Shown: piece after piece, positions 51,506-60,209 of the stretch
Layout: each line of letters starts with the position of its first letter
Position numbering within the stretch: the stretch's first letter is position 1
NCBI GenBank assembly: GCA_004431415.1
Contig: QPMI01000040.1
Span: forward strand, 186,001 to 250,000
Direction: 5' to 3'
DNA length: 64,000 bases
From: Cyanophora paradoxa CCMP329
Lineage: Eukaryota > Plantae > Glaucophyta
Translations under genes and position numbers: made by a program
Notes under the pieces: model-generated
Databases searched by the model: none
What the model was told of the DNA's origin: nothing
The model's input: only the letters and a program-made list of their open reading frames with translations

Positions 51506-51507
<2 letters not shown>

Positions 51508-51560
<53 letters not shown>
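51508..51560. repeat. (CAG)n microsatellite
   Basis: Pure CAG run upstream of the STAT-like gene; coding status unresolved. Confidence 0.9.
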
Positions 51561-51906
51561 CGCGCCTGGGCGCGACAAGCAGCAGCAGCAGGACAGCCTT
51601 CTGGACGGGTGTGCCGCGTCGGCGCGTTGTCGGGCGTTTCGGCAGGCTGAAACGCGAATTCGCACGCGGTTGTTCGAGAAGACTCCGAGCCGAGAGCAGG
51701 GCCTTCGCCGGCTGTAGTCCTGACCTTAGAATCACCCCAAGAAGCGACTGTAGTCTTTGGGTCGCCGGAGTGGCGCGGAAATCCGAGATTCCGAGTGCCA
51801 CCCGAAGAGTCCGAAGAGCTCCATCGCCAGCCTAGCACCGCAGAAGTTTGCTGTAGGCCATGGTCAAGTGCGTTGTTTCTTGTCCGAAATCGCTTGTGCG
51901 CCGCGG

Positions 51907-54900
51907 ATGCCCGTTGATGCCGGCGTTCGGCAGGGCCTTCTAAGGTCCATCCAGCACAATGATATCAGCGTCAGTCGTTTTCTCTGGTAGGAATGTACGA
52001 GAGCGCACGGAGAACAATCAGAAGGTTGTCACCGTGATTGGAGGAAATGCGGTTCGGTTGCTTTTCGTCTCTCACCTTGGTCACGAGCTCACTCGTCCTC
52101 GCCAGGCCCAGCAAGTCAGTGTGACTTTGTATATCAGAGCACCAGGGCTGAATTGGCGAGAATTGCGCCTCCGCGCCGTGCTGCAGGAACGCCCGAAGAC
52201 CGCGTGTGCGTGACTCGTCCGAGCGTTGTTTGGTTCGTCCTCACGGGACCGTGCAGCCGATATCGAATGGGTCGAGAAAGGACCGAACGTTTTCGTCACG
52301 GTTCGTTCGTGTCCGCGCATGCGCAGCTGCGCCGCATCACTCGCACGCACAGGACCCGAAGAACCGGCTGGCAAACCGAGTGGTCGCGCCGCTGCTGGAC
52401 TGGGGCTCGTTCGAGGTTCCAGAAGTGAACTTCGCAGACGCGCAACTGGACGCGGACGGCCAGGGAGCGACGAAGAACTTCAGCCTGCGCTGCGTGGCGC
52501 TAACAGGGCAGACCCATGTCTTTCGGATCCTGTTCAAGTCCATCACGCCCAGCATTCGTATCAGCTTCGTGTCCGAACTGATCGAGAGTATTTCCCGTGC
52601 TCCTGAGCGCTTCAAGAAAGCTCGCGGTGAGACCTCCAATACGCAGTGGGCCGCTTGATTCTAATGCTGATTCCTTCTTTTCGTTTCTTTGCAGTGACGT
52701 TGGATGAAGGCGGGCAGAACCCGCAGACCCCCAGCCCCTCCATGCTGTCGGACGGGAACACCTTCTCCGACGGATCCAGTCCAGAGCACCAGACAGTGCG
52801 GCCTAACATTACTCCTTGGCTCAACTACACGCTGGTGTTCATTTACTTTCTTTGCAGGACGGCGAGTCGTACTCTGGGGGCCCATTCGCTCCTGGAAACC
52901 CGGCGTCGCCGGGCGATATTCCCTTCTTCCCCGGCAGCGGCGGCCAGAGCAGCATGGCGCTGGTTCCGGGAGGTCCCTTTGGAGCGGCGACGGCGGTGCC
53001 ACACTCGCAGACGACGCAGCCAGCGGCTTCGGGCGCCGCGGGCTCTGGCAACATGATCGCCCAGGTGATGGTCCCGATCAACCACATGGGGGGGATGATG
53101 CAGCAATCGGCGCTGTCGAGCTCGGCCGCCCCGGCGCCCGTCACCGCGACCACCAGCGCCAACACTTTCGCCGCGAGCATCAGCAGCGCCTCGCCCGCCG
53201 CCTCCAACTCCGGTTCCAGTGCGCCCGCCCCCTCTTCCTCCGCGCATTTCCTGTGCTCATCATCTCCGCACAGGCTGCACGATCCTGGACTTCAAGCCGA
53301 AGCTGGGCCGCGCATCGTGCAATCGGATGCGCATGGACCTGCACGTTCAGCTCCAGATCAACGGTCAGGTCGTACAGGCAAACAACGGGCCCTCTCCGCG
53401 CTTCTGCGTCTACTTCGCCAAGCACGAGGAGGGCGCGGACGACTCGGCGAGGTCCGTTCCAGAACGCGTTTCGACCGCGCTCGCCCGCCCGCTCGCTCGC
53501 TCACGACGGGCCGCTGCAGCCGCTTCATCCCGTCGAGCTCCGTCACGGTCGTGCCGCACCGGCAGTCGGGGTGGCAGATCACGGCGGTCGTTCCCGTGCT
53601 CAACGCGTCCACCTACAACGTCGTCGTGACAGACGCGACGAACACGAGCTTCGGCCGGGCGCAGGACCTGTACGGGGCATGTAGCATTGCGTTCGGCTGC
53701 CCGCGCCCCAACGAGCGCATTCCCTCGCGGGCCGTCGATTTCATGTTCAGCCCGTCGCCCCTCTCGCCCTTCTCCGGCAGCAAGGGCTACCGCCTCTACG
53801 TGGACGACGGCCGCGTCTTCGACACGCTCAACAGCGCCCTGCAGGCGAGGAGCTGCTCTGTGCCGCCTTATTCCCGTTCCGTCATCTAACCGCGCGGCTC
53901 TCGTCCGCAGGGCGAGGAGGCCGTCATCTTCGATCGGCCGGGCGTGCACCACGCGGCGGTCGAGCTGATCGACGCCCAGCACGGCACGGCGCGCTTCGGG
54001 GCGCGCTCGCGCATCGTGCACGCGGCGCGGCTGCTGCACCTCGAGCTCTGGATGGCGGTGCTGGACGACGGGCGCAACATCACGACGCGGGTGAACCTCG
54101 ACGAGCTCGGTCTCAACGCCTTCCTCCCCGTCCGCGACTGCACCAACCGCAACGACCTCTCGGTCCGCCCGCCGGCCGCGCCGCCCGCCCGCCCTTCTTT
54201 TCCCGCCTCCTCATCCTCCTCTTCTCTCTCTTTCAGGTTTCTCCCTTCTACGAGGTGCGCTCGGACATCCTGGAGTTCGAGATCATCGACACCGTCGAGG
54301 AGGTCCACAAGAACCGCCTCGGCATCGCCGCGGGCGACTCGGCCGCCTCCACGAGTGCGCCGCCGCCCTCGCCTTGCTTCTTCTTCTTAGACTGCGAGAC
54401 GATCCTGATGCCTCGTTTCTTGTTCTTCTGTGTCGCAGGCCAGCTCTCCGCTATGTTCATGTCCCTCATGAACGAGTTCCAGGGGCTGAACGTCCGCCTC
54501 GATCTGGCGAACGTCCCGCGGCCCGTCGGGAACCCGGGGACGCCGCAGGGGCAGCCGCAGGCGGCGGGGATGCAGCTGAACGACCGGCAGCGGACCGAGC
54601 TGGACGCCATCCGCGTGCACGCCGCCGTCTCGATCGGGCGCCTCGTGCGCCTGCTGAGGACGCTGCCGGCCGCCGAGTCGCGGCGCTTCTTCTCCTTCGC
54701 CGACTCGCTGGGCAACACCCTCCTGCACTACGCCTGCGCATTCGGGGCCGAGACGCCCGTCGGGGAGCTTATCCTCGGTCCGCCCGCCCGCCCGCGCGGC
54801 AGCCCTTCCCTCCCATCGCCGCGGCTCACACCACCGTCCGTCCCGCAGCCGGCGCGGACCCGCGGGCGCAGAACCGGCTGGGGAACACGCCGGCGCACGA

Positions 54901-57641
54901 GGCGTACCGCCGGAACCGCGTGCGGGTGCTCGACGTGCTCCGGTCGCCTCAGGCGGGCCCCCTCGCCCAGGCCTCCCTTACCATCCCCAACGCCAACGGC
55001 GTCACCCTCCGGTCCATCATGGAGCGCGGTGCGCCGGACCCCGCCTGCCCGTCCGGCTCGGCTCGGCTTTGCCCTCGTTCCCCGCCTGATTTCCCGTCTG
55101 CCTCGCCCGCAGCGGACGAGGACAAGCTCCAGGCGAGCGTGGCGCTGCTGACGCTCTCCCTCGCCTCCGGGAGCACGCCGGCCTCGGCCAGCCCTTCCCC
55201 GGCCCCCCGCGCCGCCGCGGGGAGCCCCGGCTCGGCCCCGGCCCCGGGCCCCATCGGCGCCGCCTCGCACGACGCGGCGGCCGGCGGCGCGGCGCCCCCG
55301 CCGGCCTCCATCATCATGGACAGCCTCCGCAAGCAGCTCACCTGCGCCATCTGTATGGACATCTACTCCGACCCGCGGCTCCTCCACTGCTCCCACACCT
55401 TCTGCGCCACGTGCCTCATCCGCGCGGAGCACGCCGGCGTCGTCGTGTGCGCCGTCTGCAGGCAGCCGACGACCGTGGGCGCCGGCGGCTCGCTCTCGCT
55501 CAACAAGAACTACACGGTCGTGCAGCTCTCCGACCAGTTCCGCGCGATGGACAAGGAGCACAGCGGCGGCGGCGCCGGCAGCCATCCCGCCCGCCCGGGC
55601 TCGCTGGAGAGCATCCTCAACCCGCGCGGCTCGGCGGCGGCGGCGGCGGCGGCGACCGGCGGCTCGCCGCAGGCGCCGGGCGCGCCCCGCAGCAAGCTCC
55701 ACATGATCCTGAACGACCGCGAAGACGAGAAGAGCGCCTCGCGGGCGGGCTCCTGGACCGAGGACGGGGCGCTCCCCGCGGAGACGCTGGCGGCGCTTGC
55801 GCGCAAGTGGCAGCGGCTGCTGGGCGCCCCGCCCGACGAGGCGGAGTCGACGCGGATCCACTTCCGGCTGGAGGAGCGGCACATGCTGCGCACCGAGGTC
55901 GACCGCGTCTCCGGCAAGGAAGTCTACGTCGTCACCGGCGGCGCGGGCCGCTCGGCGACCCGCGTCGAGGCCGTCGCTCAGGTGAGATAGATAGACAGGC
56001 GCAGGAGGCGGTTGGGTTCCACAGCGGAAGACTCAACTTGCTCGCGCGCGCGCAGGTGTCGAGCACGGCGCGGACGCGGGACGAGCTCTGCGGCCTCCGC
56101 CTCCACTGCTTCCTCCTCTACGACGACTCGCTCTCGGGAGCGCAGGCGGAGCAGGCCTACGCGGCCGCCTTCGGCGTGGCCAAGACGAAGCTGCCGACGC
56201 CGCCGCGCGTGACGGCCGAGTGCGCGCTGAACCCGCGCACGGGCCACGTCGAGGCGCGCTTCAAGATGGTCATCCGCGCGCTCTCGCCGCGGCACGGGCG
56301 CCGCAAGTTCCGCCTCGTCTGCTGCTCGGACGAGCGCCCGCGGAGCGCGAGCTGCACGTGGGCCTTCCTGGATCGGGCCATATGGTCGGCCGAGGATGCC
56401 GTCGAGCGCAACTCGCCCACCTCGGACATGGACGTCGACGACGAGACCATGCCCGCCATCCAGGTGAGAGCGAACAACGAGGCGAAGTAGTAGGAGGCGG
56501 AGCCGAGCCGAGCCGAGCCGCCTGTTTACTTACTTCGCCGAGTGCAGGGCGTGGTGGAGCCGGACCACCGCGCCGCGGCGAGCCGCTACGTCGAGCTCGC
56601 GGCGGAGGCCGAGCGCTCCGGCGACACCTCGGTCCGCCCCGCCCGCCCGCCCGCTTTCCCGTCCCGTCCCGTCCCGTCCCGCCCCGCCGACGCCCGCATC
56701 TCCATCCAGGCCGTGGCGACGCACCTCGCTTCGTTCCTGGAGCCGCAGCTTCCCGAGGAGTGGTGGGACTCGCTCGCCTCCGAGGTGGGCGGGCCTCTTA
56801 ACCAAGCCCCCGAAAGTCACATAAGCCGACTCGCCGCGCGCAGGTCTGTCAGCTGGTGGGCAACACGGAGCACCGGGACGTTGTCCGCGGCGTCCCCGCC
56901 ATGCGCGCCTCGTTCGACGCCGCCTGGCTCCGCCTCGCCGGCCCCGCCGCCGCCTCGGACCCCGACGACAACCAGACGGTCCCCTGGCGCCTCGTCGTGC
57001 CCCTCGTCGAGGAGGCCTTCCCCGCCCCCAAGATCAACGACATCGGTGAGCCTCTCTCTTCTTCCCCTGTTCTTAGCGTACCCGGCTCACTTTCTTCTTC
57101 TCCCCCCGCTACAGACATCATGTTCATCGAGCGGAGGCTGCCCGGCGGGGCGCAGCGCACGGTCTCGCGGGCGCGCCTGCGCGAGTTCTGGGCCTGGTTC
57201 TACTTTGCGGCCCGGACGTACCGCCTGACCCGGGACCTCTGGTGCCGAGAGGAGCGCGTCATCCGGGCCTTCATGAGCCGCGAAGAGGCCGAGCGGCTCC
57301 TGAAGGGCTCCTCCCGCCCGGGAACCTTCCTCCTCCGCCTCTCCTCGCTCGCCTGGCCGGCGCCCTTCGCCGGCTGCCTCGTCGTCTCGACGCTGCGGGC
57401 CGAGGGCGACGTGCAGCACTACCTTATGAACCCGGAGCAGTGCCGGTCCCCGGACGCCGTCATGACGTACCTCTGGGAGCACCGCGAGACGTTCCTACAC
57501 GTCTACGGCGCGGCCGCCACGCGGCAGGCCGCCTACGGCGAGGTCGCCAAGCGTTACCTCACGTCCAAACAAGTGCCCGGGCAGCAGGCGCCGGCGGCCC
57601 CGCGGGCGACCCCCGCCGGCCCCACGGACGTCAACGTCTGA
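51907..57641 (+). CDS. STAT-like multidomain protein: putative Ig-fold DBD - IPT/TIG - ankyrin repeats - RING-HC - second Ig-fold DBD - linker - SH2
   Basis: Ankyrin: DSLGNTLLHYACAFG, GADPRAQNRLGNTPAHEA. RING: CAICMDIYSDPRLLHCSHTFCATCL..CAVCR. STAT-type linker-SH2: FWAWFY..DLW..IRAFMSREEAERLLKGSSRPGTFLLRLSSLAWPAPFAGCLVVS. Exons join in frame. The 5' end is uncertain and may extend to about 51750 or further upstream. Confidence 0.85.
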
Positions 57642-58259
57642 ACTCGAACGTTCTGAGCTGAGCGGGGCACCGCACGCATAGTCAGCTTAAGTTGTGGACT
57701 CTTTTCCGAGTGTCGTATTTTCGCTTTTCCTCTGTTTCCTGCGTTGGACCAAGGGTAGTAGCTATAGTGTCTAGAGCTTTTTAGGTATGAGAAACGTAGA
57801 ATAGCCAGGCGCTTGCATTTCCCAAAGCGTTCCATGCAGACCGCAGTAGCGCGCCCTTCCACAGATGACACTTGCACACGTTTCCCATGTCCGTGCACAT
57901 ATTGTCAACGGCTCTCCCCTCTAGTCGAAGGAGCAAGTGCATCGTTCTCTACGTATGTGCAGCCATCTTATCGTACATATCTTAAATACACACACCAAAC
58001 TATTGCAAATTGAACGCTGTTCAAGCTTCCAGCTAGCGAGAGCCCGCATGCGAACACTATCGCTAGCCGGGCGAGGCTAGCGCTGTGTTGTTGTCGCTGC
58101 CGAGATGCAGTTCCTATTCGAGTACGTCCGGCTCGGAAACGCAGCTGGCGCCGTCATGAGAAGAGATGTCGAGGTCGGTTCCGGTGTGAACGATGCGAAC
58201 GCAGTCGTGCTGAGGTTGCGATTGAGAGCACGAGTCAGCGAAGCGGGAAACTTTGAAAT

Positions 58260-60209
58260 TTAAAGCTCGAAGCTTAAGAGCATGCCTTGGCGCACCAACC
58301 AGCTCTTGAGGATACCCCACGCCGCACTGTACACAGCGGGATCCTGCGTGGAGAGGGCGAGGGAAAGCCCGCGGTTCGCGATCGTTAGTGGGCGAAGACC
58401 CTGCGAAGCGATCGATCAGGCGAATTTGAATGCGAAAAAGCACCACGAAGCCTCACGAACCTGCAGCACCAGGATATCCCCAACTTCTGAGAGGGTGCTC
58501 TCGATCAACAAACGTTCAGACTTGCTGCAGGAAGCCAGCGCGGCCACCTCCCCTGCCGTCAGGGGCCGCTCCAAGTACATGCCTACTCTCATGAGCACGC
58601 CACTAGCTGCCGAGATGCAGTCGGCCAGGGCGGCCGAAGACGCGGCCGGCGCTGCGACTGAGGGATCACAATCAGTACCGGCGGGACACGGCAGAGAGAT
58701 AGAGAGCAGACCATTGAGATCGAAAGAAAGACTCTCCAAGCAGGAGGAGTCGCGCGCTGCGGTCGCAAGGCCCTCCAGGAACGACGCGCCGTCCGTGTCC
58801 CTGGGGTTATGCAAAAGTTCCAGCGTGCGGAGCACGGGGGGCGCGCCCAGATGCGCCACGTCTTGGCTGGAGGCGCGCTCGTCGACCTGACCATATGAGG
58901 CGGGTCAGTCTGGAAGCGACGCGGAGCGCCGGCAGACGCACGTGGAAGCCGGAGAGGGACTCGAGTCTCGAGAAACGGGCAAGCGCTCGCAGATCCTCGC
59001 TGCTGAGAATCCAGCTAGAGCCGGAGACCTCGATGTCCGTCTTCATCGACGAGATCCGCTGCAGGGAGCGCGCTGCTTCGCCGCCAGCGAGGGCGGCCAG
59101 AACCCCGTTGCGATGGGGAGCGGCGGCGGCGCTGCCAGATAGCAAATGGAGCTCCTCCAGCGGGAGCGACGCCAAACGCGCTGCTGCGGCGGCCGACGTG
59201 GGCTCGAACGTGAGCTTCGCCAGGCGAGGAAGGCACTCCGCAAACGCTGCTGCGTGTTCCTCGGAAATCTCGCCCAATGCCTCCTCTGCGCCAAAGGGAA
59301 CGCACATGCAGATATCAGATGTTGTTGCAGATATCAGATGTTATTTAGAGATAGCTAGGAATGGGGGGCCTTACCAAGGATGAGACATTTCAAGTTCGAA
59401 AACGGGGCGAGCGCAGTGCGAAGGGCTGCTGCGGAAGTCGAATCCCGCCTCTCAATTTTGAAGCGAAGACGCAGCCCCAGCTGCAGCTCCTCTAGCGGGC
59501 TGACGCCGCCTGCTCCCGTTGCCGATGTCGCCGGCGGGTGGAGTGCTGCGAGGGCTCCGAGCAGGACGGCGTCGCGTATGCGAGTGTCGGCGACAGCTTC
59601 TGCGGTGCGCCCAGGTGCAGGCTCCAGTATGAAGCAGGCTTTCTTCGGGCCGCCGGTCGCGTGATGCCTCGTGATGGTTGCGAGGAAGTCGAGCCCCGCT
59701 TCCAGCACGCCGAACAAGGTCTTGCGTGCGCGCGCCACGGAGGTACAACTATACCAATCGTTTGACACGTAGCATCCGTAAGATTCGAAGCCCGCGTTGC
59801 ACTTGCCGGCGCGGACGAGAGTCGAGAAGGCCTCCAAGCGGAAAGGGCCAAAGCTTCTGAGCTTCAACTCGCTGAATGGGGCGCGCTCGATGACGCCGCG
59901 CCACAATCGACAGACCCTGCGCCGTGCCAAGGTATCTGTCAGAGTTCCGGCGTGCGCGTGGGGCGCTGCGGCGGCTGCAGGCAAACTGATCGCTCACCCG
60001 CGAAGTGGCCAGGCGTGCTTAACGCTTAGTGAAGCGAAGATCTTCGTCAGCAGGTCCTCGGAAAGGCCGTGGATGCTAGCCGGGGCAAAGTCGGCCGCTG
60101 CACCCACTCCCCCCGCCGCCGACGATCCGCTCCCGCCTGCTGGCTCTGTTGAAAGCTGGCTGGTCTCTTCATCGGACACGGAGCGCGCGCGCTTCGACGG
60201 CCGCTTCAT
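58260..60209 (-). CDS. F-box protein with degenerate LRR-like C-terminus
   Basis: SIHGLSEDLLTKIFASLSVKHAWPLRG|VCRLWRGVIE is an F-box; followed by LEELQLGL, FSNLKCLIL, LPRLAKLTF, LEELHL, LESLS, LRTLEL. Stop TAA at 58260. Confidence 0.85.

Follow-up and report, generated by a model that had tools for sequence, protein, structure and literature searches.

The 64,000-nucleotide stretch of the Cyanophora paradoxa CCMP329 genome that we analysed (the window; contig QPMI01000040.1, positions 186,001 to 250,000) carries on its forward strand the gene tig00000158_g10177, whose product combines two putative DNA-binding beta domains, two immunoglobulin (Ig)-like domains, two ankyrin repeats, a RING and a STAT-type linker-SH2 in one chain. 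The coding sequence (51959-57641, +) consists of 18 exons and encodes 1,509 amino acids (aa) in 4,530 nt, with no internal stops. The first-pass annotation, made from the letters of the window, had proposed a fusion of this kind in a non-animal eukaryote; the organism is indeed a glaucophyte and the fusion is a real, transcribed single gene, its 18-exon frame being built on spliced contigs of the sequencing runs X1, X5 and X18. Twenty runs of one organism contain the stretch, and four (X1, X5, X15 and X18) were aligned over 51770-57740. The introns are absent from the contigs of X1 and X5 (two studies), 14 of the 15 listed splice joints are present in X18 (third study) and none in X15, the contigs of which are unspliced; because spliced joints occur in three studies, X1, X5 and X18 were taken to be RNA, the type of a run being otherwise a guess. 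A single contig in X1 (7,060 nt) and a single contig in X5 cover 51934-57740, and at six checkpoints the coordinates of the X1 record agree with those of the 18-exon model. Of the 18 introns, fifteen are directly listed as joints and the other three (53452-53519, 55982-56055 and 56632-56709) were obtained by record arithmetic. The joints in X1, X5 and X18 are GT-AG apart from one GC-AG intron (53845-53910, within the second Ig-like domain; joints in three runs); the stretch is GC-rich and its introns are short. As had been noted from the sequence, there is no stop between the ankyrin and RING exons, which are connected in X1, X5 and X18 by an in-frame joint, 55028|55113 (intron 55029-55112). 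The gene start originally given, 51907, is wrong and falls within an intron of the 5'-untranslated region (51868-51933); the first in-frame ATG is at 51959, with an in-frame stop upstream (51941-51943).

The public protein of this gene, P0001 (tig00000158_g10177.t1, 1,457 aa), agrees with the spliced model from aa 54 onward, with 4 mismatches, and is without the first two coding exons, which shortens beta domain 1 by ~53 residues. The homology searches were made exon by exon or with P0001, and the spliced model was used for the frame check, the comparison with P0001 and the mapping of positions; since P0001 lacks exons 1-2, beta domain 1 was searched exon by exon, never whole, and was not folded whole.

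The C-terminal part of the protein contains a helical, EF-hand-like linker of STAT type (56578-57263, +; aa 1225-1384) and a STAT-type SH2 (57264-57509, +; Pfam E 1.7e-6) with an intact Arg1409 (57336-57338). The family profile of the linker matched those of plant SHA/SHB (P 96%, E 2e-9) and amoebozoan STATs (P 92%, E 5e-7), the best PDB match of the last exon was Dictyostelium STATa (1uur, E 1.6e-6), and a W-P insert in the SH2 was found in all glaucophyte and streptophyte-type rows compared and in 0 of the other rows. The linker profiles, the insert and the intact Arg thus sustain the initial assignment to the linker-SH2 of the SHA/SHB kind. In the tail, Tyr1482 (57555-57557, +; in KRYLTSK) is a candidate phospho-acceptor located 73 residues past the SH2 Arg, a distance that is 87-94 in amoebozoan-type STATs with a G-Y tail and 65-76 in other Cyanophora SH2 proteins.

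Further upstream, the predicted C3HC4 RING was recovered (55343-55459, +; aa 866-904; Pfam E 1.6e-8), with the TRIM2/3/23/56 RINGs as its closest relatives (E 2e-11). It has all eight zinc ligands in C3HC4 spacing and an Arg after the last Cys, and is predicted to be a ubiquitin ligase module. The ankyrin repeats, with flanking helices (54702-54988, +; aa ~704-775), passed the curated Pfam cut-off with P0001 and number two only.

The N-terminal beta domain 1 (51959-52607, +; aa 1-164, exons 1-4) is directly followed by a basic cluster, KKAR, that constitutes a candidate nuclear localisation signal (52611-52625, +), and then by a low-complexity linker rich in S, P, G, A and Q (52695-53218, +; aa 171-325); beta domain 2 (55853-56397, +; aa 1036-1192) lies between the RING and the STAT-type linker. 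Both were compared with a profile of paralog and plant SHA/SHB beta domains and with a plant-only profile. For beta domain 1, exon 4 outscored 1000 of 1000 shuffles with the former (13/1000 shuffles with the latter), exon 1 was weak (35/1000) and exon 2 not significant, with an hhalign P of 0.003-0.008; for beta domain 2, exon 14 outscored all 1000 shuffles with either profile (plant-only 0/1000) and the exon 13 part gave 27/1000. The paralog and plant SHA/SHB beta domains matched in a profile-profile comparison (P 89%, E 2e-6). The Atlas neighbours of beta domain 2 take in four p53-clan DNA-binding families and included PF28397 DG1062_N (0.93), LAG1 (0.87), CBP60 (0.77) and, lower, p53 (0.76) and the Spt23/Mga2 DNA-binding domain (0.76, a lead only). 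These comparisons moderately suggest that beta domain 2, and weakly suggest that beta domain 1, is a diverged copy of the beta domain of plant SHA/SHB proteins; SHA/SHB-type beta domains probably have a p53-clan Ig fold. The DNA-binding core of Dictyostelium CudA is said to be similar to this domain of the plant SH2 proteins. Of the two DNA-binding domains first proposed, the homology to the beta domain of plant SHA/SHB and, for copy 2, a p53-clan likeness by language-model features could thus be retained; the DNA binding itself is putative, and the domain is not detectably a STAT DNA-binding domain, a profile-profile comparison with the Ig domain of amoebozoan STATs having shown no detectable similarity (P 0.3%). 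Pfam matches to STAT_bind or STATa_Ig are absent here, whereas amoebozoan P0028 matches STATa_Ig, and the exons and P0001 gave no Pfam match to the Rel-homology, SPT23_MGA2 or CG-1 DNA-binding domains. Single-sequence AlphaFold of the C-terminal third reached a predicted local distance difference test score (pLDDT) of 39, and this model was not used.

Between the low-complexity linker and the ankyrins there are two beta sandwiches. The first, Ig-like one (53276-53676, +; aa 326-436), was modelled as all-beta with pLDDT ~50 and is IPT-like by position only; it had no Pfam or PDB-profile match, its similarity to Atlas clusters bearing TIG (0.76-0.79) is a lead only, and Foldseek, VIA and Atlas shape searches yielded folds of generic Ig and ankyrin type, with no match specific to IPT. 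The IPT/TIG identity initially assigned to it was thus not confirmed and, for that reason, neither was a true kinship with NF-kB, CAMTA and Spt23. The initial domain list had also overlooked the second, Ig/FnIII-like sandwich (53677-54290, +; aa 437-594), which is the better modelled of the two and a hallmark of the glaucophyte family described in the following.

The relatives that were retrieved with the SH2 and also matched aa 435-747 were P0020 from C. paradoxa, P0081 from Gloeochaete wittrockiana and, from that same sample, its paralog P0064/P0008, and the MMETSP transcript P0006. A profile of the two Ig domains of these paralogs recovered tig00000158_g10177 at E 2e-29 and no other fetched sequence; homologue searches of limited sensitivity (length- and word-limited, two of them dominated by ankyrin proteins) found no members outside glaucophyte/MMETSP records, and none were found in metagenome contigs or phages. 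All layouts open with the beta domain, the basic cluster, two Ig domains and two ankyrins and close with the linker and SH2; in between, the paralogs have an acidic stretch and an F-box, and tig00000158_g10177 has the RING and a further beta domain. In all five members the basic cluster separates the N-terminal beta domain from the first Ig and the SH2 Arg is conserved, while the F-box occupies the position of the RING and second beta domain, an exchange that the first-pass annotation did not mention. Because two unrelated ubiquitin-ligase modules share this position, the comparison suggests that ligase activity is what is kept at that slot and that the module changes. The four F-box paralogs (P0064, P0081, P0006 and P0020) have in their low-complexity tail a basic-flanked Y-F motif, 142-193 residues past the SH2 Arg, that resembles KRYL.

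The same genome encodes proteins in which this linker-SH2 is joined to kinases: P0040 and P0048 (kinase-SH2) and P0002 (TIR-kinase-SH2-kinase-SH2), all with TKL-type catalytic loops and with tyrosines 65-68 residues past the SH2 Arg. Two further C. paradoxa proteins, P0003 and P0039, carry the same linker-SH2, and in four of these five the C-terminus is a short tail bearing a Y-V/I/N motif. In a quick tree of linker-SH2 rows, collected with the SH2 exon of tig00000158_g10177, 11 glaucophyte rows were split from 41 others (SH-aLRT 88) and the streptophytes were grouped (99), and a joint glaucophyte and streptophyte clade was weak (81). The tree suggests that the glaucophyte set is a lineage expansion. 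P0038, from the malawimonad Gefionella okellyi, consists of two EF-hand-SH2 units and an EVH1-like domain.

Our preferred reading, which we hold with moderate confidence, is that tig00000158_g10177 encodes a latent transcription factor of the STAT/plant SHA-SHB lineage that is regulated by phosphotyrosine and has a ubiquitin ligase of its own. The Cyanophora TKL kinases with the same linker-SH2 would phosphorylate tyrosine on themselves or on the tail of this protein; the SH2 would bind that phosphotyrosine, leading to recruitment or dimerisation; the beta domain or domains, aided by the Ig domains, would bind DNA in the nucleus; and the RING (or an SCF complex via the F-box) would ubiquitinate either the factor or its docked partner, thereby ending the signal. 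In favour of this are: the single frame and the occurrence of these two halves, N- and C-terminal, within single open reading frames of P0020, P0081, P0064/P0008 and P0006; the exchange of F-box and RING at the same position; the retained SH2 Arg and the kinase-linker-SH2 proteins of the same genome; the match between paralog and plant SHA/SHB beta domains and the four p53-clan families near beta domain 2; and the basic cluster that follows the beta domain in 5/5 members, together with the lack of a clear transmembrane helix in this protein. Several findings weigh against it: neither beta domain had a Pfam or PDB-profile match or a confident fold, beta domain 1 is strongly diverged with support from one exon, and the control exon 7 reached 5/1000 shuffles with the same paralog and plant profile; the conserved Pro of the C-P-x-C motif in the RING is replaced by Ala; the tail tyrosine is off the STAT distance; and the kinases are TKL-type, their tyrosine activity being putative.

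Outside animals, functional SH2-phosphotyrosine signalling had been described only in Dictyostelium, where there are five SH2 kinases comparable with those of Cyanophora; as of 2010, neither of the two Arabidopsis SH2 proteins had an assigned function (PMC2906285). The present set shows that the glaucophytes, which branch deeply within the plant supergroup, possess an enlarged repertoire of plant-type SH2s, including one family that joins putative DNA-binding domains to a swappable ubiquitin ligase. It offers a culturable alga for studying the role of STAT-like proteins in the plant lineage and for asking whether ubiquitin control was built into them. In agreement with the novelty initially claimed, no description of a protein with the whole layout, or of glaucophyte SH2 proteins, was found in the literature on Cyanophora and glaucophyte SH2/STAT proteins, with most subscription papers outside coverage.

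Plant SHA/SHB proteins (e.g. Selaginella EFJ30626) share with tig00000158_g10177 the homologous beta domain, the linker and the SH2 with W-P insert, but they have an N-terminal laminin-G-like domain of their own (P0012, P0024) that is absent here, gave no match to an Ig pair, ankyrins or a ligase in the Pfam scans made, and mostly stop at the SH2 without a tail tyrosine. The amoebozoan and animal STATs (Dictyostelium STATa, 1uur) share the linker and SH2, the intact Arg and a beta domain upstream of the linker, but the latter is not detectably the STATa Ig domain, the tail tyrosine is closer to the SH2 here, 1,000 extra aa with ankyrins and RING are present, and no coiled coil was recognised before the DNA-binding domain (no Pfam match, with no dedicated coiled-coil predictor applied; the region consists of the RING and low-complexity sequence). 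Cbl proteins carry a RING. Dictyostelium CblA and animal Cbl share SH2 and RING in one chain, but the RING here is TRIM-like and N-terminal to the SH2 rather than placed after the TKB (four-helix, EF-hand, SH2), for which no Cbl_N match was obtained. Dictyostelium FbxB shares SH2, F-box and ankyrins in one chain (PMC2906285, PMC3085826), and no DNA-binding or Ig domains are described in FbxB, CblA or Cbl. Mga2/Spt23, NF-kB p105/p100/Relish and CAMTA have the same order of beta DNA-binding domain, Ig and ankyrin, with differences in the unproven IPT homology, the second Ig, the lack of a membrane anchor and the presence of ligase and SH2 in the same chain. Each pairing therefore has a precedent (SH2, F-box and ankyrin in FbxB; p53-like DNA-binding domain, IPT and ankyrin in Mga2), but membership of the canonical STAT, Cbl and NF-kB/Mga2/CAMTA families fails on the tested features; by analogy, the protein would in its working be likest a STAT with a Cbl/FbxB-type ligase.

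Another role, which we consider possible but doubtful, is that of a Cbl/FbxB-like adaptor ligase whose SH2 would capture phosphotyrosine substrates for ubiquitination by the RING or F-box, the beta and Ig domains being scaffolds or relics that have ceased to bind DNA. The ligase slot is the conserved function, no beta domain adjoins the linker in the F-box members, and the assumed role of FbxB and of the Dictyostelium Cbl orthologue is to direct proteins to degradation (PMC2906285, PMC3085826); however, the N-terminal beta domain and basic cluster are kept in 5/5 members, and the two Gloeochaete genes share 92% identity in this beta domain against their average of 76%. Unlikely, in our judgement, is a p105/Mga2-like precursor, in which a phosphotyrosine signal would induce self-ubiquitination and the proteasome would remove the C-terminal half, freeing beta domain 1, the nuclear localisation signal and both Ig domains. 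The order of DNA-binding domain, Ig and ankyrin is that of NF-kB and of Mga2, which has a p53-like DNA-binding domain and is processed after Rsp5 ubiquitination with a stall near the IPT (bioRxiv 10.64898/2026.08.31.748402), and the ligase is immediately C-terminal of the ankyrins in every member. A Gly-rich stretch (10-11 of 20) precedes the ankyrins in both Gloeochaete proteins but is absent there in tig00000158_g10177 (≤ 6 of 20 anywhere in the protein); moreover, the IPT identity is unproven, an extra Ig domain intervenes, the second beta domain beside the linker-SH2 would be destroyed, and no processed fragment was observed. It is less probable again that both ideas meet in one chain, phosphotyrosine binding by the SH2 activating the protein's own ligase, with partial proteasomal processing freeing an NF-kB/Mga2-like N-terminal factor, so that a STAT-type input and a p105-type output would operate within a Cyanophora phosphotyrosine network including the TIR-kinase-SH2 proteins. 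Two neighbouring genes merged by assembly, or a separate downstream transcript from MDSLRKQL (55317), are highly improbable: transcript ends are invisible in contigs, an extra internal start there is possible and the X1 contig reaches ~2 kb past the aligned stretch, but no stop closes the upstream half, four homologues carry the same two halves within one open reading frame, and the in-frame joint 55028|55113 is present in three studies. The two-gene reading was rejected.

The X1 contig extends beyond 57740 possibly into a convergent minus-strand gene; the open reading frame at 59355-59984 (-) had no Pfam match. At the other end, the estimated 357-nt leader contains a single ATG, which opens an upstream open reading frame of five codons, MVKAF-stop (51860-51943, +), that is split by the 5'-untranslated intron (joint 51867|51934 in X1 and X5). 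Its context is strong (GCC ATG G) and it is in frame with the main ATG, 15 nt upstream of it; were an acceptor at 51990 used, a joint that was not seen, it would become an alternative N-terminus in frame with the protein. At the estimated transcript start lies a (CAG)n run (51507-51559) of ~17 units.

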